A stretch of 64,000 bases of DNA, taken from the NCBI GenBank assembly GCA_964188305.1, contig OZ076888.1; one strand, written 5' to 3'. Positions 9,501 to 58,394 of the stretch are shown here, one piece after another; position 1 is the first letter of the stretch, and every line of letters begins with the position of its first letter. A model generated the notes under the pieces. The model made no database searches. It was not told the origin of the DNA and saw only the letters and a program-made list of their open reading frames with translations. Position numbers and translations under genes: made by a program. Origin of the DNA: Podarcis bocagei. Its lineage: Eukaryota.

Positions 9501-12500
9501 CTAGACAGTTACCACATCGTTGTCCAAATAAAAGCGAGTGAACGGCTCATGGGGCAGGAGCAAGAGAGCATCTGAAAAGAAGAACAAATGAAAAGACAAA
9601 CCTCTGTATCAAAAAGTGTCGTGTCATTTCACCTCCGGCCTGAAATAATCTTGCAATTTCCCTTTGGTCTTTGTTCTTAGATCTGGGCTTTCAATCCTGC
9701 CTACCAGTTTCCTGTGTTTGAAGGGCCAAAGCTTTGTCTTAGATTGTAAGCCTATGGGAGGTTTCCTCAGCCTGGTGCAATCCTGGTACGCTGAGCTGCA
9801 TTGTCCCAAATGCTATTTAACAACAAAAATGCAATTGGGAGCAGTGATCAGGAGGTTTGGGGCTCTCACTGCCTCCAGTACTCAGTAAGGGCAACATGAC
9901 CAGCAATTTGACTCTCTTTAGTTTTGCCGTGGCCTGGTGATTATATCAAGCTGGTGGCACAACAGAGGTGGGCATTTTTGCTGATGGCACCATATGCTTT
10001 CCCTGCCGAAATCTGGGATCCATTCTGACAGTTCTCATAGCCTCACCTGTTTAGACAAGCATTTCCCTGCTCTGACCTGAATCTCCTGTTTTGATTGATG
10101 TCTTAATGGTTATGCTGTGTTAATGGGCTTGAGTTATTTTATATTTCAATCATGGATTAATGTAGTTGCATTATAGATAGATAGATAGATAGATTCTTTA
10201 TTGTCATTACACTAGTGCAACATTGCACAAGTGCAACGAAATTGGATGCCATCCCTTAAAAACAGTAAAAGCAAAACAACAACAACAACCAAACAAACCA
10301 CCTTCCAACCACACCCACCCCCACCCCCAAAAACTCCCAGATCTCACTATCGAGTTACAGCATTCAAAAAGGCCACAGCTCTTGGATAGAAACTGTTTTT
10401 CAGTCTATTTGTCCTTGACTTGATGTTTCTATACCTCCTGCCAGAAGGCAGTAGTGCAAACAGACTGTATCCCGGGTGAGATGGATCCTGCAGGATGTTG
10501 TTTGCTTTCCTAAGGCAACGGGAACCGTACAGTTCTTCCAAAGGTGGGAGAGGGTGACCAATAATCCTTTGGGCTGTGGTTATGACCTTCTGGAGCACCT
10601 TCCTCTCTCTAGCTGTACAACTGGAGAACCAAGCACAAATACAGTATGTGAGTATGCTCTCTATGGAGCCTCGGTAGAAGGACACCAGTAGTCTCTCACT
10701 CAGATTGTTCTTTTTTAAAAGTCTGAGGAAATAAATTCTCTGCTGGGCCTTCTTCACCAGAGCAGTGATATTTGCGCTCCAAGTCATGCCCTGATCCATA
10801 GTCACTCCCAAAAACCTGAATTCCGCCACCCTCTCCACCCGTTCCCCGTTGATATACAAGGGCTGAATGTCCGCCTTTTTTCCCCTGTAATCCACCACCA
10901 ATTCCTTGGTCTTAGCCGTATTAAGAGCCAGATTGTTCTCTCCACACCAAACACAGAGCCGCTCCACCTCGTCCCGATAGGCGGACTCATCCCCTCCTGA
11001 GATGAGCCCCACCACCGTAGTATCATCAGCAAACTTGATGATTTTGTTGCTGGAGTAGATGGCTGTACAGTCATACGTATAGAGAGCATAGAGCAGGGGA
11101 CTCAACACACAACCCTGTGGTGAGCCGGTGTTAAGGCTAAGGGCTGTGGACACATGTGACCCTACTCTAACCCTCTGAGAACGTTCTGACAAAAAATCCA
11201 AAACCCAGAGACAGGTGGAGTTGGGGAGTCCAATCGTCTCTAGCTTGGACACCAGTCTATGGGGGAGGATAGTGTTAAAAGCAGAGCTAAAATCCACAAA
11301 CAGCAGCCTCACATAATTCCCCGGCTGCTCCAGATGGGACAGAGCAGCATGGAGAGTGGTGGTGATAGCGTCTTCTGTGGATCTATTTGCCCTGTAAGCA
11401 AACTGGTAGTTGTCAAAAGTTAATGGAAGACAAGAAATAATATGACGGCGCACCAGTTTCTCAAAACACTTCATGATGATTGGAGTCAGTGCAACTGGTC
11501 TGTAGTCATTCAAACTACTGATTGTGGATTTTTTAGGCAGAGGGACAATAGTTGACGACTTCAGGCAGGGTGGGACAATAGACTGGTGTAAGGACTTGTT
11601 GAAGATCGTAGTAAAGACCCTCGCCAGCTGATCCGCACAGCCCTTCAACACCTTTCCAGTGATGCCATCAGGTCCAGCCGCCTTCCTCGGATTCACCATC
11701 CTCAATACTTGTCTCACCTCGTGCTCCTCTACAGTGAATGAGGGGCCCCTATGGGCTGGTGGCTGTAATACCGGCGTCTCAGGTGGCTCCTTCTCGAAGC
11801 GAGCAAAGAAGAGGTTAAGCTCCTCCGCCAGCAAAGGGTCGCCGTCGACAGCGCCAAGGTTAGGTTTGTAGTTGGTAATATGCTGAATCCCCTGCCACAT
11901 CTGTCTTATGTTGTTGCTCCTTAAATTATCCTCAATCCTCTGCCTATAATCCAGTTTTGCCCGTCGAATGCCCCTCTTCAAGTTTGCTCTTGCCACACTG
12001 TAACGCTGCACCTCGCCCGACCTGAAAGCCCTGTTCCTTTCCCGCAGCAGGGGAGTTGCATTTTTAAAAAATAATAATTTGGTTTCTTCTTGTTATTTTG
12101 CTTTTGGCTCTTAATTGTTTGAATGGCCTCTTTCATGAAAGGAAAGGTAGTATATAAATTCTATTATTATTAATAATAGTAATAAAAATAAGTCCCATCG
12201 TCCCAAATCAATGGCTCTGCTGACTCAGGCTGATATCTGGAGCAGGGGTGGAGGAAGTGGGGGCGGTTTGCCCTGGGTGTTACCATTGAGGGGGGTGACA
12301 AAATGCCATGCGTCTCTCATGGGAGTGATATGGTGGCTTGGGCACCCACAGGCTCCATGCTTCCCCAGACGGTCCACCCGCCACCTCTCCCTCAGCTGTA
12401 GGGCAGCTGAGTGGGAAGAGGCAGGTAGACTCCTCGGAGGCCCCACGGAGCGTCCTGCCCTGGCTTGCCCTGCCCCTGCGGGCGGCTGTCCCTGTCCCTG

Positions 12501-39825: not shown

Positions 39826-42800
39826 TATTATTATTATTTATACCCCGCCCATCTGGCTGGGCCTCCCCAGCCACTCTGGGCGGCTTCCATAAAACCAAAA
39901 ATACAGTAAAATCACACGTTAAAAACTTCCCTGAACAGGGCTGCCTATGTAGTGGTTAAGAGCGGTGGACTCGTAATCTGGGGAACCGGGTTCGCTTCCC
40001 CACTCCTCCACATGCAGCTGCTGGGTGACCTTCTCTGAAGTCTCTCAGCCCCACTCACCTCACAGAGTGTTTGTTATGGGGGAGGAAGGGAAAGGAGAAT
40101 GTTAGCCGCTTTGAGACTCCTTTGGGTAGTGATAAAGCGGGATATCAAATCCAAACTCTTATTCTATATGAGTGTGTGCATCCATGCATACACGTACATA
40201 CATTTGCACTGTAGGGCGCACTACAGTGACTCTCTCACTGGGAGGGGGGCCATAGCTCAGTGGTAGAGAACATGTTTTGCATGCAGAAACTCCCAGGTTC
40301 AATTCCTGGCATCACCAGAGGGGTGACCATTGTCAGAAACCTTGGAGATCTGCTGCCAGGTATCTTCAAACATTTCAGACCCAGGACGTACTTTTAACCC
40401 AAACATGCATTTAGGGGACCCATTTCTCAGCCTTTTACAATATGTTTGCATGGTGGCAGTGCTCCTGTTGTGACCCACCTTGGATCAGGTCATGATCCAC
40501 TAGCAGGTCCTTAACCCACAAGCTGAAGACAGTAACGTAGACAGTACTGAACTAGGTGGACCACTGGTCTGGCTCTCTATAGGGCAACTTCCTCTCAATT
40601 AAATTTGTTAAGGCTTTTAGCCCAGCTGGAAACATCATTAAAAATAAAAGCGGCAATATAATAAAAGAGCCCCTTATAAGTTGTATGTAATCTGCAGGCA
40701 GTATAGTTGCGTTTGATGGCAGAATCTGTTCTTGCCATTTACCTTTGTGAGTCCAGAGCACTCTTCCTTGCATCCAGATGTGCCCTAATATTTTGACAGG
40801 CCATTTTAATTCTGCAAGCAGCCTGCCTCAAGGAACCGAGCATCTCAAGGGTACAGTGCATGCAGGTCATGTTTTGTGTAGAGCTGTAAATAGAATCTCG
40901 GAGAGATGGCTCTGCCTTCTGGGTCATGTCTCAGGGGTGCAAAAATCTGCTTGTTCCTTTGGTTTCAGCCCAGGACCTTGTTGGTGTTTATCTGACTAAC
41001 AAAGTCATCCTGTATTTCAAGCTTCATTAGAACTCATGAGTGTCCCTCAGCCCAGAGTCTTGGCTGATGCTCAAATCGTTACGTGAAATGTATTTCCCCT
41101 GGGGCTCCTGCCCAACTTTAGAGGGTTTCCTGNNNNNNNNNNNNNNNNNNNNNNNNNNNNNNNNNNNNNNNNNNNNNNNNNNNNNNNNNNNNNNNNNNNN
41201 NNNNNNNNNNNNNNNNNNNNNNNNNNNNNNNNNNNNNNNNNNNNNNNNNNNNNNNNNNNNNNNNNNNNNNNAGCCCTCTTTCTGACTGGGCATCCACCTG
41301 TCATTTCCCTCCATTATTTTTGGTCCTATCATCTATGGAAGGAAGAGATTCTGGGATTTGGGGGAGAAGTTGTGGTGGAACACTTGAAATGCTTTGATCT
41401 CATTGATAAAGGAGGGTCCTGGCCAAAACAGTGGCCCAAAGGCTACTGTTTTAATCTATTTCCAATATTTCATTCTCCCTTTCTCCCCCTCAGGGAGGGG
41501 TTAATCCTCTTTCCCTTTTTTTTTAATCCTCACGACGACCCAGAAAGTGATGGGCTCTCCTTCCTTGGAGGTTTTTAAGCAGAGGTTGGATGGCCATCTG
41601 TCATGGATGCCTTAGTTGAGATTCCTGCATCGCAGGGGGTTGGATGAGATGGCCGTAGGGGTCCCTTCCGTCTGTATAGCCCAGCAGCGACTAGCAGTGG
41701 CTTCCAGGCTCTTGCAACAAGTTTTTTCTGCCCCCTGTGCTACATGTTTCTTTTAAGTGGAGGTGATGGGGATTGAACCCTGGGCCTTCTGCATTCAAAG
41801 CCTATGCTTTTCCACTGAGCTACTGTTCTTGCAGTTCGTTCTGCCTTTATTTACTTAAGCCTTTTCTTACTTAGGTCTTTACTTTAAGCTATTTGTCTTG
41901 GCCCAGGAACCACCGAAGGTGAAGACGATAACCCGATACAAATCTGCCTACGAGGAGCAGCTGGAACAACAGCGGCTGGCCGTCCAGCGAGCGGAGGAGG
42001 CCAATCGCCTCAGAGAACACCAGGAGTCTCTGCACCAGGGGAGACTACAAGAGCAGTTGCTACGGCAGCAGCAGCTTCAGGAGCGAGAGCTGACACTGCG
42101 CAGGCAGGCAGAGCAGGGCGAAGAGCAATTTAAACACCGCCTAAGGTTATCTTTCTAAAATGCACTTTTGGCTCCTGTCGGCCTCTGAGAAAGGAGGTTA
42201 GCTCAGGTTGCCTCAGACTTTGACAGTGACTAGAATTGCCAGAACCTTCTGGAACCTTCTGGTACTTTCTTCAAACCCCTGCTGGGAGGTCAGGGCCTTT
42301 GTGGGGGGGTCAGGCTGCTAATATGCTACCCATGAGGAGGTGCAGGCCAATCCACTTCTCCACTGCTGCCAGTGGAGCAGGATAAAGATGCGGGCCATTC
42401 CTTGATCTGTACCATGTCCTGTCAGCAAGCATTTAGAAAATGGCGTTCGCCATGGGCACCTACAAACTGGCTTTTCAAGTGTCTGCTGTCTGGAATCCTT
42501 TTTGCATTCTATTGCCTTAAAGCAGGGGATCTTTTTCCTGACTCAGGGCCACATTCCCTCTAGGGAAGTCTTGCAGGGGCCACATGCCAGTGGTGGGCAA
42601 GCCTAGTAGGTGGAATAGTGGGTGCTGACCTTTAAAGCCCTAAACGGCCTCGGTCCTGTATAACTGAAGGAGCGTCTCCACCCCCATGGTTCAGGCCGGA
42701 CACTGAGATCCAGTGCCGAGGGCCTTCTGGTAGTTCCCTCATTGTGAGAAGTGAGGTTACAGGGAACCAGACAGGGGCCTTCTCGGTAGTGGCGCCTGCC

Positions 42801-50668: not shown

Positions 50669-51641
50669 CATTCACCTGCCCAGTGGCAGTGTGAGTAAGC
50701 ATATGCCAAGATTGTAATTGCCCCTTCCTTCGCCAATTCACCTGGGGCATGTGCAGGGTGGAGAAGGCATGGGTCACCTAGTCAAGAGAAGAGGAGGCTT
50801 TTCAAAAGTCATATCAAGTAATTACACCCAACTTTGTGGACAGCAGGATCTGGAATCAATCTAGCAGCATTTTGAGGGTGAGCACGATTGATTCTGGATT
50901 GAGGAAACACAACATGTTTTGTGCTGCAAGCAGGTTGTTTGAACGCGGCCCTAGACCCCGACTACTCCAGGCTGAGGAGCAAGCAGCTTGCGCTCTTGCA
51001 GTTGCTATTGAACAGCCTCCATGATGCAATGGAAAAAACACCAGGGCATTCTTGTTTCCCTGGACTATTTGACCTTTGTCAAACAATATGTGATCAGTTG
51101 ACAATGTTGGACAGGTTAATTGGCCCAAACCTCAAGTGTAATTATTGGTATTCTTTTTAGAAGAATTTATAGCAATAGGGTTGAATGGAGTCTTAAAAGA
51201 GCACAATATGTTGCTCCAGCTGTTTGTCACAACTTGATCTCCCCCAGCAGAGGATAGTTCGGTTCAAGGCTTTAGTAATCATAGAATTTCAACAGCCTGC
51301 AGTAGCACAATAATCCTGTTTTGTTCTGTGCTGTGACTGGTGTGTGTGTGTGAAGAAATATTTCGCCATAGCAAATGCTGCAGAGTTTTATCATCAAATA
51401 CATGTTTTCCAAAAAGCTGAATAGTTTTCTCTTTTGTTATCTTTGTTCTGGGGTTATTATTTTCTCATGCTGCCAGGCTGAAGAAAAAATGAGTGAAGGT
51501 GCAGAGCAAGAGCAAGAAGTCAAAGAGGAAAATAATCGTAAAGAAGGCCGTGATGAGAACTACGAGGAGGAAGAGGAGGAAGAGGAAGAAGAGGAAGGTG
51601 GCGCTGTGGCAGCAAAGGCTCATAGACGAGGGGAAATGTGA
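364..51641 (+). CDS. GOLIM4: GOLIM4 (Golgi integral membrane protein 4, GPP130) gene span, 16 coding exons, 2130 nt CDS, 709 aa
   Basis: Spliced translation matches GOLIM4 as recalled, from MGNGMCSRKQKR plus a TM anchor, through a coiled coil and acidic Glu/Gln-rich lumenal domain, to C-terminal HRRGEM. All introns are GT-AG with consistent phases; exon lengths sum to 710 codons. Confidence 0.97.
996..1221 (+). mobile_element. Tc1/mariner (Tigger-like) MITE, 226 bp
   Basis: TA|CAGTGGTACCTC...GAGGTACCACTG|TA; an inverted copy of the same family lies at 34460-34685. Confidence 0.9.
4568..4870 (+). mobile_element. L2 LINE 3' fragment
   Basis: Translates as RTLRSS...RAFSVVAPTLWNALP...FRRHLK, typical of the L2 ORF2 C-terminus; related copies elsewhere in the window. 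Confidence 0.85.
5290..5806 (+). mobile_element. Degenerate LINE 3' end (RTE-X-like, C-terminal Cys/His motif)
   Basis: LCPCGLVEVETVSHVLLRCRFY motif followed by an AT-rich 3'UTR ending in aataataaaattc. Confidence 0.55.
6908..7085 (+). mobile_element. Old tRNA-derived SINE
   Basis: tgtggtctagtggttagag head and cctcacagggttgttgtgggg core; similar to 23496 and 49940. Confidence 0.55.
7207..7707. mobile_element. Tc1/mariner non-autonomous element (~500 bp)
   Basis: TIRs aagtgataccttggttctcaaac / gtttgagaaccaaggcaccactg|TA. Confidence 0.8.
8530..8770. mobile_element. Tc1/mariner MITE
   Basis: TA|tagtggtacctcggttta...taaaccgaggtaccactg|TA. Confidence 0.85.
10173..12053 (-). mobile_element. Rex1/Babar-clade LINE, 5'-truncated, with intact RT reading frame
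   Basis: ORF 10347-12011 stays open to the 5' edge and carries AAGPDG, DYRPVALT, QFAYR, DFSSAFNTI, PQGCVLSP, FADD and DPSHP...LLPSGRRYR. It has a (TCTA)n tail and a 9-bp TSD AGTTGCATT at 10164-10172 and 12054-12062. Confidence 0.92.
10347..12011 (-). CDS. Reverse transcriptase (TE-derived ORF2 fragment, no endonuclease domain)
   Basis: 554 aa with canonical non-LTR RT motifs and no stops. Confidence 0.85.
   Translation of the reverse strand: MQRYSVARANLKRGIRRAKLDYRQRIEDNLRSNNIRQMWQGIQHITNYKPNLGAVDGDPLLAEELNLFFARFEKEPPETPVLQPPAHRGPSFTVEEHEVRQVLRMVNPRKAAGPDGITGKVLKGCADQLARVFTTIFNKSLHQSIVPPCLKSSTIVPLPKKSTISSLNDYRPVALTPIIMKCFEKLVRRHIISCLPLTFDNYQFAYRANRSTEDAITTTLHAALSHLEQPGNYVRLLFVDFSSAFNTILPHRLVSKLETIGLPNSTCLWVLDFLSERSQRVRVGSHVSTALSLNTGSPQGCVLSPLLYALYTYDCTAIYSSNKIIKFADDTTVVGLISGGDESAYRDEVERLCVWCGENNLALNTAKTKELVVDYRGKKADIQPLYINGERVERVAEFRFLGVTMDQGMTWSANITALVKKAQQRIYFLRLLKKNNLSERLLVSFYRGSIESILTYCICAWFSSCTARERKVLQKVITTAQRIIGHPLPPLEELYGSRCLRKANNILQDPSHPGYSLFALLPSGRRYRNIKSRTNRLKNSFYPRAVAFLNAVTR
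12243..12553. mobile_element. hAT-type MITE
   Basis: Perfect 8-bp TSD ATCTGGAG (12235-12242 / 12554-12561); imperfect CAG...CTG TIRs. Confidence 0.8.
12952..13130. mobile_element. hAT-like MITE
   Basis: TIRs caggggcggactt / aagtccgcctctg flanked by duplicated tgtttgg. Confidence 0.7.
13815..13952. mobile_element. hAT-like MITE
   Basis: cagggctttttt...aaaaacagcactg ends; degenerate 8-bp TSD gatatgac/catatggc. Confidence 0.6.
14013..14068. repeat. Perfect 28-bp tandem duplication
   Basis: atggcttttatttcagggtatcaagtct x2. Confidence 0.95.
15093..15335. mobile_element. Palindromic MITE with long TIRs
   Basis: ataccactttaaactgtcatagcttcccc...tctgggaactgtagt mirrored by actacagttcccagga...gggaagccataactgtttaaagtggtat. 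Confidence 0.75.
15737..15990 (-). mobile_element. MIR/CORE-like ancient SINE
   Basis: gtgctttcacatacatta...atccttacaataac...attattagtccccatattacagg...actgag...cttgcctaagg pattern. Confidence 0.6.
18152..18402. mobile_element. hAT MITE
   Basis: caggggtaggcaacct...aggttgctgacccctg with perfect 8-bp TSD CTCTAGTG. Confidence 0.85.
19611..19960 (+). mobile_element. RTE/BovB-like LINE 3' fragment
   Basis: KLRLQYFGQLMRREDSLEKTLMLGKMEGTRRRGRQRTRWLD...GVTKNRTQLND followed by an (AAC)n tail; TSD agccttatta. Confidence 0.9.
20882..21230 (-). mobile_element. Sauria SINE
   Basis: Minus strand reads gggac...gtggcactgtggtctaaacc head through to an (ACCTTT)n tail. Confidence 0.88.
21275..21644 (-). mobile_element. 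Sauria SINE (second copy, tandem with the previous one)
   Basis: Same head and (ACCTTT)n tail; different subfamily body. Confidence 0.88.
22507..22732 (+). mobile_element. tRNA-derived SINE (Squam3-like)
   Basis: gagccagtgtggtgtagtggttaagagc...gatatcaaatccaaact; five highly similar copies in the window. Confidence 0.8.
23857..24232 (+). mobile_element. CR1 LINE 3' fragment
   Basis: LGMFSLGKRRLRGDMIAIVKYLKG...RTRINGFKL...FRIDIRKNF plus CR1 3'UTR (ttggactagatgacc). Confidence 0.9.
24602..24676 (+). CDS. GOLIM4: GOLIM4 exon 2
   Basis: ttttcag| VVYEHRSRLEKSLQKERLEHKKAKE |gtaaaa; 75 nt. Confidence 0.95.
26288..26337 (+). CDS. GOLIM4: GOLIM4 exon 3
   Basis: tttttag| DFLVYKLEAQETLNKGR |gtaagt; 50 nt. 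Confidence 0.95.
27212..27265 (+). CDS. GOLIM4: GOLIM4 exon 4
   Basis: ttgcag| QDSNSRYGALNVQHQMLK |gtagat; 54 nt. Confidence 0.95.
28076..28226 (+). CDS. GOLIM4: GOLIM4 exon 5
   Basis: tttgcag| SQHEELRKQHADLEEEH...EKEQELSKLK |gtacag; 151 nt. Confidence 0.95.
28440..28522 (+). CDS. GOLIM4: GOLIM4 exon 6
   Basis: taatag| ESMYNLREENRQLRKAHQDIHTQLQDVK |gtaaga; 83 nt. Confidence 0.95.
28712..29200 (-). mobile_element. Probable non-autonomous Helitron (3' end at 28712; 5' limit uncertain)
   Basis: Minus strand: hairpin cccgggcaataccggg, 10 nt, then CTAG|T. A degenerate duplicate of the hairpin unit lies at ~28992-29020. Confidence 0.6.
29507..29590 (+). CDS. GOLIM4: GOLIM4 exon 7 (84 nt, symmetric phase 0-0, candidate cassette exon)
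   Basis: gtgtag| LQHKSLISQHDQLVVTLEEHKSALEAAQ |gtcagc. Confidence 0.93.
29718..29887 (+). promoter_or_regulatory. Cluster of three TGCATG (RBFOX) intronic splicing elements downstream of exon 7
   Basis: TGCATG at 29718, 29792 and 29882, i.e. 128-297 nt after the exon 7 donor. Confidence 0.65.
30366..30436. repeat. (ATT/ACT)n microsatellite
   Basis: Direct observation. Confidence 0.95.
30641..31021 (+). mobile_element. Sauria SINE
   Basis: gggacgcaggtggtgctgtggtctaaacc head through to tacctttccct tail. Confidence 0.88.
31022..31250 (-). mobile_element. Internal L2 ORF2 fragment
   Basis: AELFRVARGLL...CDLLAKHFEDKIACI resembles the L2 pre-RT region. Confidence 0.6.
33194..33226. repeat. (TG)n microsatellite
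   Basis: Direct observation. Confidence 0.95.
34198..34365 (+). CDS. GOLIM4: GOLIM4 exon 8
   Basis: attctag| SQVEEYRQLKETLKKMPSFQKPE...EEQKE |gtaata; 168 nt. Confidence 0.9.
34460..34685 (-). mobile_element. Tc1/mariner MITE (same family as 996-1221, opposite orientation)
   Basis: TA-flanked TIRs; the reverse complement aligns with 996-1221. Confidence 0.9.
35600..36875 (-). mobile_element. CR1 RT fragment split by an L2 insertion
   Basis: 36875-36618 encodes ADD...NWAKANKMPFNRDKCKVL...RDLGVLV; the frame resumes at ~35710 with HKLNTSQQ...NAALGCINRGLVS. Confidence 0.75.
35711..36617 (-). mobile_element. L2 LINE 3' ~0.9 kb with (ATT)n(ATC)n tail
   Basis: WMAANGLRLNPDKTEVL...LGVILDSQLS...LVISRLDYCNALY.GLP...LQLIQNAAARL. 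Confidence 0.9.
37935..38012 (+). mobile_element. CR1 3' terminus
   Basis: gattcctgtattgcagggggttgg...gtcccttccaactctatgattctgtgatt. Confidence 0.8.
38023..38251 (+). mobile_element. tRNA-derived SINE (Squam3-like)
   Basis: Same family as 22507; (CTT)n tail. Confidence 0.8.
38531..38890 (+). CDS. GOLIM4: GOLIM4 exon 9
   Basis: ttgcag| ITLNGDQ...EEHKKELEEEEMEQAGQPERL...HHHSE |gtgagc; 360 nt. Confidence 0.9.
39770..39945 (-). mobile_element. Short L2 3' end with (ATT)n tail
   Basis: Matches the terminal sequence of the L2 at 35790-35890. Confidence 0.8.
39946..40163 (+). mobile_element. tRNA-derived SINE (Squam3-like)
   Basis: Same family as 22507. Confidence 0.8.
40246..40340 (+). mobile_element. 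tRNA-derived SINE head (older family)
   Basis: ggggccatagctcagtggtagag...ggttcaattcc A/B boxes; related degenerate copies at ~31372, ~32258 and ~41765 (-). Confidence 0.6.
41133..41271. other. Assembly gap (139 N) in intron 9
   Basis: Run of N. Confidence 0.99.
41548..41672 (+). mobile_element. CR1 3' fragment
   Basis: tctccttccttggaggtttttaagcagaggttggatggccatctgtc... Confidence 0.8.
41907..42145 (+). CDS. GOLIM4: GOLIM4 exon 10
   Basis: gcccag| EPPKVKTITRYKSAYEEQLEQQRLAVQRAEEANRLREHQESLH...HRL |gttatc; 239 nt. Confidence 0.9.
42619..42996 (+). mobile_element. L2 3' fragment with (ATT)n tail
   Basis: Homologous to the 4568, 35711 and 43481 copies. Confidence 0.85.
43481..43770 (+). mobile_element. 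L2 3' fragment
   Basis: YLKEHL...RTLRSSAEGLLAVP...RAFSVVAPALWNTLP. Confidence 0.85.
43929..44005 (+). CDS. GOLIM4: GOLIM4 exon 11
   Basis: ttctccag| HQSHYDNLDQDIVQGEEQGAQEEEE |gtaagt; 77 nt. Confidence 0.92.
44341..44459 (+). CDS. GOLIM4: GOLIM4 exon 12
   Basis: tgatcag| NYDRQNQHPDEAEEED...QNEEP |gtgagt; 119 nt; phases fit both neighbours. Confidence 0.88.
45168..45246. repeat. (CT)n(CA)n compound microsatellite
   Basis: Direct observation. Confidence 0.95.
45403..45962 (-). mobile_element. Second Rex1/Babar LINE 3' fragment (different family)
   Basis: TAQDIMGCP...RCLRRVRKILRDDSHPG...LLPSGRRYRSI...NFYPWAARLLN; ends tgacaataaa plus a (TTTCAA)-type tail. Confidence 0.85.
46677..46844 (+). 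CDS. GOLIM4: GOLIM4 exon 13
   Basis: atgcag| KTAGDDVNPADDPNNQGEDEFEEAEQEREENLPDEN...EEHLV |gtcagt; 168 nt. Confidence 0.93.
47185..47527 (+). mobile_element. Sauria SINE with 13-bp TSD
   Basis: CTTTCATGATCCT at 47172-47184 and 47528-47540; (ACCTTT)n tail. Confidence 0.9.
47674..47850. mobile_element. hAT MITE
   Basis: cagtggcgtagcgtggg / cccacgctacgccactg TIRs; TSD attgtggt/attgtggc. Confidence 0.88.
48699..48767 (+). CDS. GOLIM4: GOLIM4 exon 14
   Basis: ctgcag| MVGNPDQQEDNVDEQYQEEGEEE |gtaagg; 69 nt. Confidence 0.95.
48885..49551. mobile_element. Tc1/mariner non-autonomous element containing a nested SINE
   Basis: TA|ccatacttttccgt...acggaaaagtatgg|TA. Confidence 0.8.
48919..49196 (+). 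mobile_element. tRNA-derived SINE (Squam3-like), nested
   Basis: Same family as 22507; (AAC)n(CTT)n tail. Confidence 0.8.
50310..50390 (+). CDS. GOLIM4: GOLIM4 exon 15
   Basis: ttttcag| AQGDLTEEKKRELDHNGEEPYGENDEN |gtaggc; 81 nt. Confidence 0.94.
50628..50667. repeat. (TG)n microsatellite
   Basis: Direct observation. Confidence 0.95.
51477..51641 (+). CDS. GOLIM4: GOLIM4 exon 16 (coding part, to TGA)
   Basis: tgccag| AEEKMSEG...YEEEEEEEEEEEGGAVAAKAHRRGEM*. Confidence 0.94.
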   Translation, partial: AEEKMSEGAEQEQEVKEENNRKEGRDENYEEEEEEEEEEEGGAVAAKAHRRGEM

Positions 51642-51724
51642 TTCTTGCTTGAGCTGCAAAATGGCATCTGCTTGGAAAAAAAGAAGAAAATGTTTAGTTG
51701 CTAGAGAAGGCCTTTTTATATGTA

Positions 51725-52052
51725 CAGTGGTGCCTCGCAAGACGAAATTAATCTGTTCCGCGAGCCTCTTCGTCTAGCGGTTTTTTCGTCTTGCGAAGCA
51801 ACCCTATTAGCAGATTAGCGCTATTAGCGGTTTAGCGGCTATTAAAGGCTTAGCGGCTAAAAGGCTATTAGCGGCTTAGCGGCTTAGAAAAAGGGGGGGA
51901 GCGGAAAAAAATCGGAACACTCGCAAGACGTTTTCGTCTTGCAAAGCAAGCCCATAGGGAAAATCGTCTTGCGAAGCAGCTCAAAAACAGAAAACCCTTT
52001 CGTCTAGCGGGTTTTCCGTCTTGCGAGGCATTCGTCTTGCGGGGCACCACTG
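51725..52052. mobile_element. Tc1/mariner MITE 84 nt downstream of the GOLIM4 stop codon
   Basis: TA|cagtggtgcctcgcaagacgaa...ttcgtcttgcggggcaccactg|TA; internal ttagcgg repeats. Confidence 0.9.
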
Positions 52053-52398
52053 TATACATAATTTAAATTTTTTCTCTTAGAAGTCTTTGTGGTTTTATAC
52101 AAATGCAATATTTTAAGTTAGCATTCCTTTTGTACAAGATTTTAAGTGACAAAAACAAATAGGTGAGGTGGCAACCCCCTTATTTTTCCTCCTTATTTTT
52201 ATACTGTTTCTTTTCTAGAAGTTTGAGGATCAGTTTCAACTTAAATCTGTTTGGCATTGTCCAAACCGTGACCAGACTTTAGCTTTCAGGTGTATTTCTG
52301 GGGGTCAGGGGGGACCGATCATTAGTGCCTAATCTCTTGGACAAAATAAAAAAATTTCCTTCCAGTAGCACCTTAAAGACCAACTAAGTTAGTTCTTG

Positions 52399-52436
52399 GT
52401 ATGAGCTTTCGTGTGCATGCACACTTCTTCAGATAC
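52399..52436 (-). ncRNA. Mirror-copy minimal hammerhead ribozyme motif
   Basis: Exact reverse complement of 52532-52569. Confidence 0.78.
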
Positions 52437-52531
52437 ACTGAAACAGAAGTTGCCAGACCCTTCTATATACTGAGTAATACCCCTCCCCACCTTCTCACTA
52501 TATAGAAGGGTCTGGCAACTTCTGTTTCAGT

Positions 52532-52569
52532 GTATCTGAAGAAGTGTGCATGCACACGAAAGCTCATAC
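52532..52569 (+). ncRNA. Minimal type-I hammerhead ribozyme motif (Penelope-associated)
   Basis: GUAU-CUGAAGA-A-GUGUG(CAUG)CACAC-GAAA-GC-UC^AUAC: helix I GUAU/AUAC, helix II, palindromic AGCU helix III, predicted cleavage after C52565. Confidence 0.8.
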
Positions 52570-53747
52570 CAAGAACTAACTTAGTTGGTCTTTAAGGTGC
52601 TACTGGAAGGAATTTTTTTATTTTGACTATGGCAGACCAACACGGCTACCTATCTAATCTCTTGGAGTTTGAGAAACGGCAGGCTGCAGAGTTGCACCCA
52701 TATCTCTGTGAGATGCTGGATTTTACATCCAGCTCTCTACGGGACAGCACATTCAAGCACCTCTGTGTATTCATTTTGATCTGAATGAATTTGGCCAGCA
52801 CAGTATCTGCAGCATCTAAGTGAATATCACTTGGCAGTTGTGAGTGTGCCAAAAATGGCAGTGTTTGAATCCCTTTGCATGTGACACTCATGCACACACT
52901 GGGTGGGACTCATGTTGCAGGTCTTTCACACCCTCTTGTTGCTCTTCTTCCTATAGAGGTGTAATTGATTAGATTAGCTCAATGCAGACATTTGGTCTTA
53001 CCCATATATATGCAGTACCTAACTCACACAAGTGTGTTACCGCAGGCCATAAAGTATAGATGGATCAAAGGGTTTCTTCTTACCACTTCAAATATTATGC
53101 GCATGTAGACTTGGCCATTGTACATCTGACCCCAACATTGTTCTCATGTGCTGGTGGAGATAGATCTGTCCTTAGCCTTATTGCCCTATCTCAGGCTGCA
53201 ATCTTGGAATAAGCCCCAAGGAAAACAAAGAAACTTACTTCTGAGTAAACATATTTGGGGTATGACTCTACCACCACTCAAATCCCTTCTAGATCAAAAG
53301 AAGATAGATATAGACCCCCCCCCATTTGGTTTATATACCATATGATACACACATTTTGAAGTCACAGTCACAATTTCTTTTTCTTCAGCATTGTGCACCT
53401 CTCAAAAAGTTGTGTGGGATTTGTTTTTGTTTGTAGACCGTAAAGTGCCTATCTTAAGGGCTAAAGGAGTATTTCACATATATTATCTCAGTAATCCTTA
53501 CCACAACCCTTGTAAGGTAAACCAGCAATACTGTCCTCTTATTTCCAAATGGATGTAGCCTAATGTTTAAAGAAGACAGCTGGCTGGAGGTTACCCAGGG
53601 GGTCATTGAAGCCATTCTCCTCTTGTGCATAAAAGCTCCCCTTCTCTGGGCTTCCACTGTTGGCCTGAATCTTAGTCATGATGTCAGTAAGGAAGGCAGG
53701 AGGCCAAATAAATGCATAAGAAGGCTGGAGACTGGTGGCTTGCCAGA

Positions 53748-54010
53748 GAGCCAGCGTGGTGTAGTGGTTAAGAGCGGTGGACTCGTAATCTGGCGAACCA
53801 GGTTCGCTTCCCTGCTCCTCCACATGCAGCTGCTGGGTGACCTTGGGCTAGACACACTTCACTGAAGTCTCTCAGCCCCACTCACCTCACAGAGTGTTTG
53901 TTGTGGGAGAGGAAGGGAAAGGAGATTGTTAGCCCCTTTGAGACTCCTTAAGGGGAGTGAAAGGTGGGATATCAAGTCCAAACTCCTCCTTTTCTTCTTC
54001 TTCTTCTTCT
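53748..54010 (+). mobile_element. tRNA-derived SINE (Squam3-like) in the putative 3'UTR
   Basis: Same family as 22507; (CTT)n tail. Confidence 0.8.
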
Positions 54011-55648
54011 TGCCCTCTGGTCGCTTAGCCAGTGTAAAAGACCGGATAGTATTAAGGCATATACTGAATACATGGCTAACATGAGATTTGAAACCAGACC
54101 TTTCCTATCATAAGTGGGTGGAGATGATGGTCTCCTCTAAACTCAAATAAAATTTAGTATTATGTTTGACAGAAGAATGAAAAGAATGTGAAAAAAGAGT
54201 ATGTTAATCTGTTGATACTCGGATCAGTAGCTCTATTTTATGTTAGAAAAGTGTGTGGTACAAAATGTGGTACACTGGACTGCTTACAAGGTCCATATTC
54301 CTCACCTCCCTAATGATGTGCTGCTTTCCAGGCAAGCGGAAAGGCTTCACCTGGCAGAAATAAAATGGGTGGTTCTTTCCTGGCATGGTGGAGGATACAC
54401 ATCTTTAGCCACACAAGTCCTATACTGCATAATCCCTCTAAGGGTTCAAACTGGGGACCGCAATCAGATCATATATGCTTCATACCCCCATTACGTATTT
54501 TATTTGTATTTTTTAATGTGATGGTACGTTGGCTTCAAAAGGGTTAAAAATCAAGTCGTCATTGTTAAATGTCAGACACTGGGAATTGATAGCAGTGATA
54601 GACTAGCCCCACCGTACCTGAATCACTGGACCACCAACTTTGTTGCTTCTTATTCTCCCACTAATATTATTGTTTCTCCTGCAATTTTAACAGTGACCAC
54701 ATGGGCCAAGAGAATGACTCACCTGTTTCCTTCTGCCTACCCACCTGCAATCTTGTACGGTTAGCATCACGGGCGTGGGCCAGGTTAACGGGCAACAGTT
54801 CACAATGGCTTAGCCAGAAATTAGGACCTCGGCGATGCTGGTGTAGTGCTTAGCTGTGATTTCTGCAGGCGACACAATGTGTGACTGTTGCTTTGTCTGA
54901 GGACAGGTGGCAAGTTCTGTGCTCGTGGGCTTGTAAGATCGTAGCTGAGTTGCAGAGCTTATATCCATGAATATGCTGCACCACCCATCCTTCATGCGCT
55001 TCTGTTCCTAGGGATACTAGTGAGCAGGGAATAGGATAAGGTATTGGAGGACAGAATTTTGTGTGCCACATGACCAGCTCTTTGGCTGCTGAGCTAACCT
55101 GCCACCCACAGATGTGGCAGAAGATGATGTCTGCGGCCAATGTTGGAAGTAAGATTAATCTGTCAGGCCAGTTAGCTTCTACACATGGACTGGGATAGAG
55201 GCACCATCTTACGCTTCACATTTTGGAAGCAAAAGGTCTTGGGCGGGCTCCAACACTTCCTCCATCTTTTAAGAAATTGCATATATATGACCCATAGGCT
55301 ACTATTTTAACTTTTTTATATGAATGTAATATAATTCATTTTTGTACTAACCTAATTATTAATTTTGCTTTTGTAGATGCTTTGAACTATTTCCTTTATA
55401 TATATATATTTAAGAGTAGGGGTACTCTTAACATTTCATAGGACTGTGTGTGTGCGGATTTGAGGTTTTCTAAATGTTACAAAAAAAGATTTATCACACG
55501 GAGAAAAGAGATTCCTGTTTACATAAATGACTGTAAAGTGTATGATATGTACATAATCTTCGGAATACAAATATTTTGATACATTTGTGTGTATTTTTAA
55601 TGCCATGGGGCAGTATTTAATTATTCTGAGGCATATTTTAGGGTCATC

Positions 55649-55654
55649 AATAAA
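55649..55654 (+). terminator. Candidate distal poly(A) signal of GOLIM4
   Basis: AATAAA ending a ~400-nt AT-rich, TE-free block that includes TGTACATA (55548), followed by GT/T-rich sequence (tgttagtctggtgctctttttg). Confidence 0.5.
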
Positions 55655-56612
55655 AGCTAGAATCAAAACTGACCACTATGTTAGTCTGGTGCTCTTTTTG
55701 CTATTGCTCTGGTGGCAGTTTCACAGCTGTTCTGAGAATGAATGGATAAAACTGCAGGTAAGGAATGCTTGCAAATATTAAGTATTTCCTGTTTCATCTT
55801 TAGTTGGAAATGTTCACACATGGATCATCTTGACTGCATCTGCTCTGACACAAGAGCAAAGTATTTTATTTGTTGGGAAGAGAAAAAACATAATGTTGTG
55901 CTGATGGTCGAGAAAATTATATTTTATTAAACCGACTTCAGTTGGTGCCGACTATTTACATTTTAATTATAGGAAACCCTTCGTCAAAGAAGGTAAAAAA
56001 AACAGCTCAGTCTTCTAGAACAAATTTCACAGAACCTCGGAGGAAGCTTCAGTCTGTTCCTGCCTTGGGAAAGGATGATGGACCATATCCAGTGATGTGT
56101 ATGTGTTTCTCTCTTGCGTGTTGGATATCTCCAAGTGGGTTTAGGCTCCTATCATTTAAAGGCCAAAAACTGAAGCGTCAGAGAAAGTTGTTTGTGTTCC
56201 TGTTGCTGCCTCAGCTCTGAATAGGCCTCTGAAGTAAGATAGGAGAAAGGAAGAGAATCTAGCTCAGAGTTGGAGAATCTTCCCTTTGCTCAAGGGTGCA
56301 TTGGAGTTGCCTGGCTTGTGCCTGAGTGATATGTGGTGGCCTTGGAGACATCCTTACACTCAAGTAGAAATACATCTTATGGTAAAATTAATGGGACATA
56401 CTACAGTCAGGATAGACAAGAGTCCTTGCGTTTTGAAGTCTTACAGATTTCCATCTTTTCTACTTCAAGCTAATCAAACCCAACCCAACCCTATCAGTCT
56501 TGACTCATATGCCATGTTTTACTGACCTTATAATCATAGTACATTGACTTCCTTCATGTCTTTAGGTTCTTCCAAGCTTTTCTAAGACAAATGATGTCAC
56601 CAGAATGCTTAC

Positions 56613-56778
56613 TAGGGGTGTCCAAACTTTTTTAAAGAGGGCCAGATTTGATGAAGTGAACATGCGTGAGGGCCAACCAAAGTGGTTGACCTTTTTTAAG
56701 TTGAGCTTTTTTTAGGATTGAAGTTGTTGAGCTTTTTGTAGAATTTTAACCCCCAGGCTGGACTTTGGACATGCCTGC
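56613..56778. mobile_element. hAT-like MITE
   Basis: taggggtgtccaaact...actttggacatgcctg TIRs. Confidence 0.6.
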
Positions 56779-58394
56779 CTTAGGCATATCTAAATTGATA
56801 AGGAGCAAGGTGCTGGTAATAATAATAAAAAAGTATTAAAATATGTGCAGTTGCTATTAGTGGAAAAGCAAGTACATTTGTGTGGGAAGAGGACATAGGT
56901 ATAAGAGTGGGGCTGAGGGGGTGCAGGGCCCCCAAAATGTTGAGGTACAGTGAGGGAAAACCCTTTCACGCTTCACTGACAGTACAAGATAAGTGTTGAG
57001 AAACGGCACTGGATGATGAAGTTTCATGGGTCAGTTGGCACATTCATGCTCTTGAAATAGTGCAATGGGTGGCAGTGACAAGATGGCTGCTGTGAAGGCC
57101 TGGCACAACACCACATTTGCTTGCAGAGAAGCTTTCAGCTGCACCCAGTGAAAAATTAGCAAGTTTAAAGGGGTGGTTCAGTGTGGGTGAGGCCAAGCCA
57201 ATGCCGACAGGAACTGAGCAGGAAGCACAGGTTCCTAGCTTTGTGGGCTTGTTGAGGGCATTTTCTGCTGAGAACTTTTATGGGTGCCACAGAAGTTACT
57301 GGTGCTCCCTGGCCTACACTTTTTTGAAGGAAGCTTGGTAGCTGAGGAGAAGGGTGTCAAAGTATGTAGGGGGGAAGAGAGAGCAGGGAAAGCCCAGGAA
57401 CTTCTGAGATGAAGAGTTGTGTACTGCAGAGGGATGGGGAATTTAGAGTTTGAGGGATGGAGACCTATAATTGGGAGACAAATGGGAACAGAATGCCATG
57501 ACAGGAAAGGATTTGTTTGTGGGGAGGTGAAGGCGGTCAAAAAGACTATGAAGTCTTCTCCCCACCTCCTACCCCATATATACTGACTCAAGATAACCAA
57601 TAACATATTTGAGCAGAAGACAGTATGTTTTAAATTTTAATGCTGCTTCACAGCACTCTATTGATTTTCTTAAGTGACCTTCATGAGGGTTTTCAAATTC
57701 TGAAAGTGCACATTTGTTTGCTATTTATAAGCAGGTGCATTTGTAGTTTAACAATGGAAATACTTACAGAATGTCAAGACCCATTCACCCAAAGCTGCTG
57801 AACTTCAGCAAGATAAAACATTTCCCTTAATATGCATGACATAATAATATTACTTCTGATAGTTTTCCTGGAAGAAATTCAATATTTTGGGTTGGCTCAA
57901 TTTTTCACTTATTCATTAATTTCTCAGTCATCACCAGCCATTTTTTTATACATATAAACAAAATAAGAAATAAATGTGCCTGCCACATCAAGCCAAAACA
58001 CATGCTTACATTTTTATTGGAATTTAAATGTCAGCGTTGAACTTTAGTTGAATCCTGGAATATAAAGGAGGCACTAGTTTGCTTCATATTAAATATAAAT
58101 ATTTCCAGCTGCTGAGAATGGAAAGCACAGCAGATAGGCATCTTAACAGCTGTTATGCAGGGTCCAACTGAAACATGTGCATCGCTCTACTTCAGGGGTG
58201 GGGACCCTCTTAGTCATGGGCCAGTCCTGGCCTGATCGGGGGTCAAATGTGGCCTGCAAGGACATTTTCAAAAATCCATGTCCACCTGCCAATCAGCTGA
58301 TGCCATTCCAATGTCAGCTGGTGAGTGGCAGGTCAGGTTTGATTCTGCTTTGACTGGACATGCTAGTTCCCCCGCTGGGAACTGGCAAGCACAG

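Follow-up and report, generated by a model that had tools for sequence, protein, structure and literature searches.

The window analysed here, a 64,000-nt stretch of contig OZ076888.1 in the Podarcis bocagei assembly GCA_964188305.1, carries the gene GOLIM4 and, within the 3' untranslated region (UTR) of that gene, a 312-bp insertion (52342–52653) made of two inverted arms, each holding one hammerhead ribozyme motif. We consider this insertion very probably a Penelope-like element (PLE) copy that consists of two very short pseudo-long terminal repeat (pLTR) fragments placed head-to-head, each copied from the 3'-terminal portion of the pLTR RNA, has no open reading frame (ORF) and was made by PLE reverse transcriptase/GIY-YIG machinery. 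The hammerheads are a motif common to every such pLTR. The features on which this reading draws are collected in Table 1.

The gene was recognized by its first exon (364–549), which over its full length is 87% identical to an NCBI entry named 'golgi integral membrane protein 4' (E = 4e-26); on the sequence of this exon, we identify the gene as GOLIM4. The last exon (54 amino acids), compared with 1.84 billion representatives, returned four Logan fragments only. Other ORF pieces in the window presumably resemble the human GOLIM4 protein.

To place the insertion relative to the transcript, we aligned four runs (DNA and RNA) from a related lizard, hereafter organism A, to positions 51300–57200. 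In one RNA contig the exact match to the window begins at 51477, after a CAG acceptor, and is preceded by 1269 nt of upstream exons, and this contig therefore represents spliced mRNA. RNA contigs of organism A at a depth of 55–90, together with stranded reads that all map to a single strand, extend as far as ~55672, 18 nt past the AATAAA at 55649, where the depth drops to zero. Because the relative's spliced mRNA and stranded reads run through the unoccupied insertion site to this end, the site lies inside the GOLIM4 3'UTR. A preliminary description of this locus had considered a position in the UTR as a possibility; its wording, just downstream of the stop codon, understated a distance of 700 nt. 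In a single-cell RNA run of the relative, 32 of 37 molecules start at 55099, ~570 nt before the UTR end, which may mark an internal priming site or an alternative GOLIM4 3' end in that animal.

Table 1. Positions of the GOLIM4 3' end, the insertion and its hammerhead motifs in the window. TSD, target site duplication.
Feature	Position	Strand	Basis or remark
GOLIM4 last coding exon, acidic C-terminus	51477–51641	+	ORF and organism A mRNA contig
GOLIM4 stop codon	51639–51641	+	ORF
GOLIM4 3'UTR	51642–55672	+	organism A RNA; AATAAA at 55649–55654
TSD, left copy, CTAATCTCTTGGA	52329–52341		exact direct repeat; single copy in organism A DNA and mRNA contigs
Left arm, inverted PLE pLTR fragment	52342–52474	sense on −	tail-less 3' terminus at 52342
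AATAAA hexamer, candidate poly(A) signal	52345–52350	+ (GOLIM4 sense)	arises at the left arm's outer end
Minimal type-I hammerhead	52399–52436	−	exact copy of the + motif; predicted cleavage between 52403 and 52402
Central spacer, unpaired	52475–52493	.	29 nt (52470–52498) if counted from the perfect arm parts
Right arm, PLE pLTR fragment, sense	52494–52625	+	TATATA at 52499–52504, upstream of the hammerhead
Minimal type-I hammerhead	52532–52569	+	string match and descriptor
Helix I, 4 bp GUAU/AUAC	52532–35 with 52566–69	+	short helix I (4–5 bp)
CUGAAGA catalytic box	52536–42	+	type-I order
Extra unpaired A	52543	+	between A9 and G10.1
Helix II, 5 bp, loop CAUG	52544–48 with 52553–57	+	G10.1-C11.1 is G52544-C52557
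GAAA box	52558–61	+	as in the descriptor
Helix III palindrome AGCU	52561–64	+	no loop 3; helix III needs a dimer
Cleavage site residues U16.1, C17	U52564, C52565	+	as in the descriptor
PLE 'tail', ACTATGGCAGACCAACACGGCTACCTAT, 28 nt	52626–52653	+	right arm only; no left counterpart in the arm alignment
TSD, right copy, CTAATCTCTTGGA	52654–52666		exact direct repeat; empty-site joint of the relative

The element is bounded on either side by an exact 13-bp direct repeat, and both the size and the TSD given in the preliminary description hold. A repeat search returned inverted arms at 52344–52474 and 52494–52624. Gapped alignment of the reverse complement of 52342–52474 with 52494–52625 gave 131 identities in 132 positions, with 1 mismatch and one 1-nt indel in an A/T run, and blastn gave 98.5% identity between the arms. 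The perfect core of the arms occupies 52342–52469 and 52499–52625, separated by 29 nt, in agreement with the arms, spacer and single T indel reported before. Beyond the right arm lies the tail, which opens ATG GCA GAC... and includes a CAACAC motif. The 312-bp copy contains no ORF, and each of the three sense frames is interrupted by stop codons on the way from the hammerhead to the tail. The match of one organism A RNA contig starts at 52470 and extends to the right, which weakly favours the spacer being part of the longer, sense unit. As RNA, the 312 nt are predicted to fold into a single hairpin with a minimum free energy (MFE) of −238.4 kcal/mol (z = −31 against shuffled sequences).

The relative provides the unoccupied site, a comparison that the preliminary description had called for. 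A DNA contig and an RNA contig of organism A both join 52328 to 52654, skipping 325 nt with 12–13 shared letters; this joint is the empty site, with the TSD sequence present once. In the flanks, the DNA contig differs from the window at 21 of 1030 letters, or ~2%. Because the site is empty in the DNA and also in the spliced mRNA of organism A, the insertion is real and young, dating from after the split from this ~2% diverged relative. The two arms have diverged by no more than 1 substitution and 1 indel, in keeping with an insertion that postdates this split.

Each arm carries the string GUAU CUGAAGA A GUGUG CAUG CACAC GAAA GC UC/AUAC, on the + strand at 52532–52569 and, identically, on the − strand at 52399–52436, so that the core and its exact mirror are where the preliminary description had placed them. 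Searching the window for the 34-nt part of this string that runs from CUGAAGA to AUAC gave two exact occurrences, one per strand, with a chance expectation of none. We scripted the minimal hammerhead ribozyme (min-HHR) descriptor of Cervera & De la Pena 2014 (PMC4209133) as a pattern scan. It matched only these two positions in the 64-kb window and gave 0 matches in 200 Markov-random windows, on which ground we rejected a chance origin of the string; it also accepts the junction of tandem units of Poseidon_Ac (PAc), a PLE of Anolis carolinensis (File S1, PMC11167929). An exact 23-nt motif pattern had 0 matches in metagenome contigs. Beyond the descriptor, metazoan PLE min-HHRs are characterized by a conserved G10.1-C11.1 pair, a palindromic 15.2-16.2, an enlarged helix II and a helix I of 4–5 bp (PMC4209133); all descriptor features and all four 'emergent' features are present here. 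The motif is thus, judged by its architecture, a bona fide PLE-type minimal hammerhead. The published set includes similar motifs in reptiles, namely turtle and snakes, but no lacertid family (PMC4209133).

Covariance models, the check suggested in the preliminary description, gave a negative result: the Rfam hammerhead models (Hammerhead_1, _3, _II, HH9 and HH10) matched nowhere in the window at gathering score, and relaxing the threshold to E<=10 for a 501-nt segment and for 76 nt of the right arm brought no hammerhead match either. This miss is expected, because the motif lacks a helix III stem-loop. A miRNA gene was also considered and rejected, the Rfam precursor matches being sub-threshold (147 bits vs a gathering score of 245) and to plant families; these look-alike matches are a response to the long hairpin stem.

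A further difference from the published min-HHRs is that helix II and its loop (52544–52557) form a perfect 14-nt palindrome, GTGTGCATGCACAC. When two core segments were cofolded, the prediction was a 14-bp duplex through this palindrome (−32.6 vs −15.6 kcal/mol for two monomers), pairing that would be predicted to compete with the hammerhead fold. The helix III dimer was absent from this cofold, which gave dimer formation no support.

Assignment to the PLEs follows from the arrangement of these parts, and it agrees with the origin proposed in the preliminary description. In PLE insertions generally, an inverted, 5'-truncated copy abuts a pLTR head-to-head and a tail of 30–40 bp is found at one end only (Craig et al. 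2021, PMC8557442); in rotifers, a tail of 31 bp is borne by just one of the two inverted pLTRs, the pLTR contains a TATA box, TSDs are short and insertions have been proven by empty sites (Arkhipova et al. 2013, PMC3846280). The P. bocagei insertion shares with Pen2a-type insertions of the rotifer Adineta vaga, and with PLEs at large, the head-to-head inverted pLTR fragments, the one-sided tail (at 28 nt slightly under the published length), the TATA box, the short TSD and the empty site. It differs from the Pen2a-type insertions in consisting of two pLTR stubs with a 13-bp TSD, where those have an ORF between the pLTRs and TSDs of 8–10 bp. Paired min-HHRs are themselves familiar, having been described 100–700 bp apart on opposite strands (PMC4209133). 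The hairpin insertion is therefore of an already known kind, an ordinary by-product of PLE integration.

Reads from other copies of the element bear on its 3' ends. The genome of organism A shows a very high word depth over the element, and reads and contigs of other copies there break off at 52625 and at 52654/5; because they end at these two points, 52625 and 52654/5 are two discrete, family-wide 3' termini. The relative's genome contigs also contain many joints from 52436–52437 to 52528–52553, which correspond to further palindromic copies with arms that reach only to the 5' boundary of the hammerhead (52532). This boundary, ~30 nt downstream of the TATATA, may mark a pLTR transcription start for short template RNAs.

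One of the closest known counterparts is Poseidon_Ac, a member of the Penelope/Poseidon clade and likewise a squamate PLE. Its hammerhead has the same CUGANGA box, one extra nucleotide, G10.1-C11.1, GAAA, a 4-nt palindromic helix III and C17. The two differ in helix II (5 bp and a 4-nt loop here vs 6 bp and a 7-nt loop in PAc) and in helix III (AGCU here vs ACGU in PAc). The PAc protein acts on both DNA strands, cleaving and extending each of them (Frangieh et al. 2024, PMC11167929), and its reverse transcription starts at consensus nt 85 and 119, ~34 nt apart, which with the hammerhead site at nt 30 places the starts 55 and 89 nt past the cleavage site (PMC11167929). In the P. bocagei copy, the distance from the hammerhead cleavage site to the end of the left arm is 60 nt, and to that of the right arm 88 nt. 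Both elements thus have two 3' termini that lie a tail of ~30 nt apart, with CAACAC in the tail, at 55/89 nt in PAc and 60/88 nt here, and priming on both DNA strands, as in PAc, would explain the inverted arms.

These parallels suggest, by analogy with the Anolis enzyme, that the insertion arose by twin target-primed reverse transcription. The endonuclease would have cut the two target strands 13 bp apart, and from each 3' end reverse transcription would have begun at one of the two start sites inside the PLE RNA: one at the site ~60 nt past the hammerhead cleavage site, yielding the tail-less left arm, and the other at the site ~88 nt past it, yielding the right arm with its 28-nt tail. Both cDNAs would have ended after ~130–185 nt and been joined in the middle, leaving a copy that was presumably dead on arrival. 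Snap-back copying of a single cDNA, the other way in which such a hairpin might form, would be expected to leave the tail on both arms.

Twin priming has a precedent in L1, where, as Ostertag and Kazazian reportedly described in 2001, the 3' ends on both sides of a staggered break serve as primers for cDNA synthesis from one RNA. The likeness lies in the inverted, TSD-flanked outcome. The second L1 priming event is internal, depends on homology and inverts one copy, whereas here both primings would take place at 3'-proximal sites set by the protein, giving two copies of the same 3' end. The locus offers a natural example, with empty-site proof, of one tail-less and one tailed arm, the outcome that the 2024 in vitro model, in which both strands are primed from two internal start sites, predicts.

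Several points weigh against the PLE reading, or against its details. Neither linked to the copy nor anywhere in the window is there an ORF for a reverse transcriptase/GIY-YIG protein, and family membership would have to be argued from architecture rather than from nucleotide alignment: outside the core, comparison by eye with Poseidon_Ac, the only PLE compared, gave no alignment. A literature search for descriptions of lacertid PLEs returned nothing specific. The TSD is not clearly AT-rich, unlike the preference of PAc. The choice between priming on both strands and snap-back self-priming is drawn by analogy, and in the carrier species the insertion is known here from the assembly sequence. 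Finally, the stops in all three sense frames between hammerhead and tail differ from the situation in Poseidon_Ac, whose ORF starts inside the hammerhead; because of these stops, the source may be a non-autonomous, pLTR-derived family and not a truncated autonomous copy.

This last alternative, a short non-autonomous element derived from a pLTR (a relative of retrozymes or a SINE-like unit, SINE denoting a short interspersed element) that was mobilized in trans by a PLE, is possible, if tentative. In addition to the interrupted frames, the A9-N-G10.1 triplet is AAG where Poseidon_Ac has ATG, and the very high word depth of the element in the relative's genome would suit a family of this type. 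Rotifer pLTRs alone suffice for mobilization in trans (PMC3846280), and a pLTR origin of retrozymes has been proposed in the literature. The element also resembles non-LTR retrozymes in its type-I hammerhead with minimal helix III, its relatedness to pLTRs and the absence of an ORF (Cervera & de la Pena 2020, PMC7229834; Li et al. 2026 preprint). Two points argue the other way. The tandem direct arrangement that defines non-LTR retrozymes, whose direct repeats yield circular RNAs, is missing; because the insertion comprises just one inverted pair and the window holds no copy in direct orientation, we rejected a non-LTR retrozyme in the strict sense. In addition, the ORF of rotifer PLEs begins within a few dozen nt of the pLTR's end, and the tail here does start with an ATG, so that an autonomous parent is possible.

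Whichever of these was the source, the insertion could alter the processing of GOLIM4 mRNA in its carriers by routes that do not involve a ribozyme. This proposal is compatible with a PLE origin, to which it would add a consequence, and we regard it as unlikely in its own right. The first route would be early polyadenylation at the AATAAA at 52345, which stands in sense orientation at the edge of the element, ~3.3 kb before the usual signal at 55649, and would shorten the UTR from ~4.0 kb to ~0.7 kb. The second would be ADAR editing, Staufen binding or Dicer processing of ~130 bp of double-stranded RNA, for which the near-perfect stem, at a predicted −238 kcal/mol, would be a substrate. Both routes gain from the position of the site within a UTR that is expressed in the relative, and retrozyme copies that overlap exons tend toward 3'UTRs (Li et al. 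2026 preprint); against them, many transposon insertions in UTRs are neutral. A ~130-bp double-stranded stem together with a new AATAAA in the 3'UTR of a conserved Golgi gene could thus affect expression.

Very improbable, by comparison, is a DNA transposon of the miniature inverted-repeat (MITE) or foldback type, or a palindromic assembly artefact, that happens to contain a hammerhead-like string: long terminal inverted repeats are what such elements have, and PLE palindromes do trouble assemblies (PMC8557442), but the termini are asymmetrical, with a 28-nt tail on one side and a 13-bp TSD (on which ground a MITE or foldback element was rejected), the motif is far beyond chance, both discrete 3' ends are common to other copies, and the clean TSD and the relative's empty site argue for a real insertion event.

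There remains the proposal, made in the preliminary description, of a ribozyme lock, in which the GOLIM4 3'UTR would hold a usable hammerhead that is kept off by the antisense arm and freed by unwinding, editing or truncation. One part of it stands. The isolated 48-nt core adopts the hammerhead as its predicted MFE fold (−7.8 kcal/mol), and in the isolated right arm the hammerhead fold is predicted to lie only 3 kcal/mol above the MFE; in the full element, forcing helices I and II would cost ~69 kcal/mol. On these models, then, the hairpin masks the motif thermodynamically, and the intact core and its place within the UTR likewise speak for the proposal. The working device, on the other hand, is unsupported. 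Since the hammerheads lie on opposite strands, any one transcript carries one ribozyme strand and its antisense. With one sense hammerhead per mRNA, the dimer needed for the AGCU helix III therefore cannot form in cis. Metazoan min-HHR monomers show no detectable cleavage in vitro and dimers cleave weakly (PMC4209133), and cleavage by the PAc hammerhead is protein-assisted and C3/G8-dependent and leaves no ends in RNA-seq (PMC11167929). Read starts were not reported to accumulate at 52566 in the numerous reads of organism A that derive from PLEs.

The arrangement to which the lock appeals is, moreover, generic: inverted arms are a routine by-product of PLE integration, and the relative's contigs contain other palindromic copies. 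The insertion is young and lineage-specific, so that no conservation argues for function, and the negative result of the Rfam hammerhead models also counts against the lock. We therefore give the lock next to no credence. Were the UTR read through, the transcript would form a stem of ~130 bp with the sense hammerhead inert within it, and any effect on GOLIM4 would be exerted through the double-stranded RNA or the AATAAA at 52345 and not through self-cleavage. It is scarcely conceivable that read-through mRNA of the carrier, with its stem opened or edited or with PLE protein or RNA supplied in trans, would be cleaved after C52565; if it were, a retroelement-derived ribozyme would act as a lineage-specific switch of GOLIM4 mRNA stability. 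Independently of these possibilities, closely related lizards differ in the presence of the PLE insertion, which makes it a young presence/absence marker.

A second insertion lies in the same 3'UTR, 290 bp upstream of the PLE hairpin. This 328-bp MITE (51725–52052) has CAGTGGTGCC(T/C)CGCAAGACG as its terminal inverted repeats and, in the Tc1/mariner style, a TA duplication; it is missing from the DNA and mRNA contigs of organism A, which join 51720 to 52051. Because the MITE and the PLE are both absent there, two young insertions set the GOLIM4 UTR of the window apart from that of the relative.

Other repeats were seen in the alignments and elsewhere in the gene. High-copy repeats with a word depth >1000 times that of single-copy sequence occupy 53664–54057, inside the UTR, and 56619–56815, beyond it. 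At 53949 the relative's reads continue with a different, highly consistent sequence (agreement 0.95–0.97), a sign that the genome from which the window comes may carry a deletion or a shortened repeat. Within GOLIM4 introns, 40246–40317 gave a borderline Rfam tRNA match (29.1 bits, the gathering score being 29) that includes several non-canonical pairs and is probably the tRNA-derived head of a SINE, and 10347–12011 (−) holds a 554-amino-acid ORF with reverse-transcriptase motifs (FADDTTVVG) of the long interspersed element type, not of PLE type. A run of N is present near 41.1–41.2 kb.

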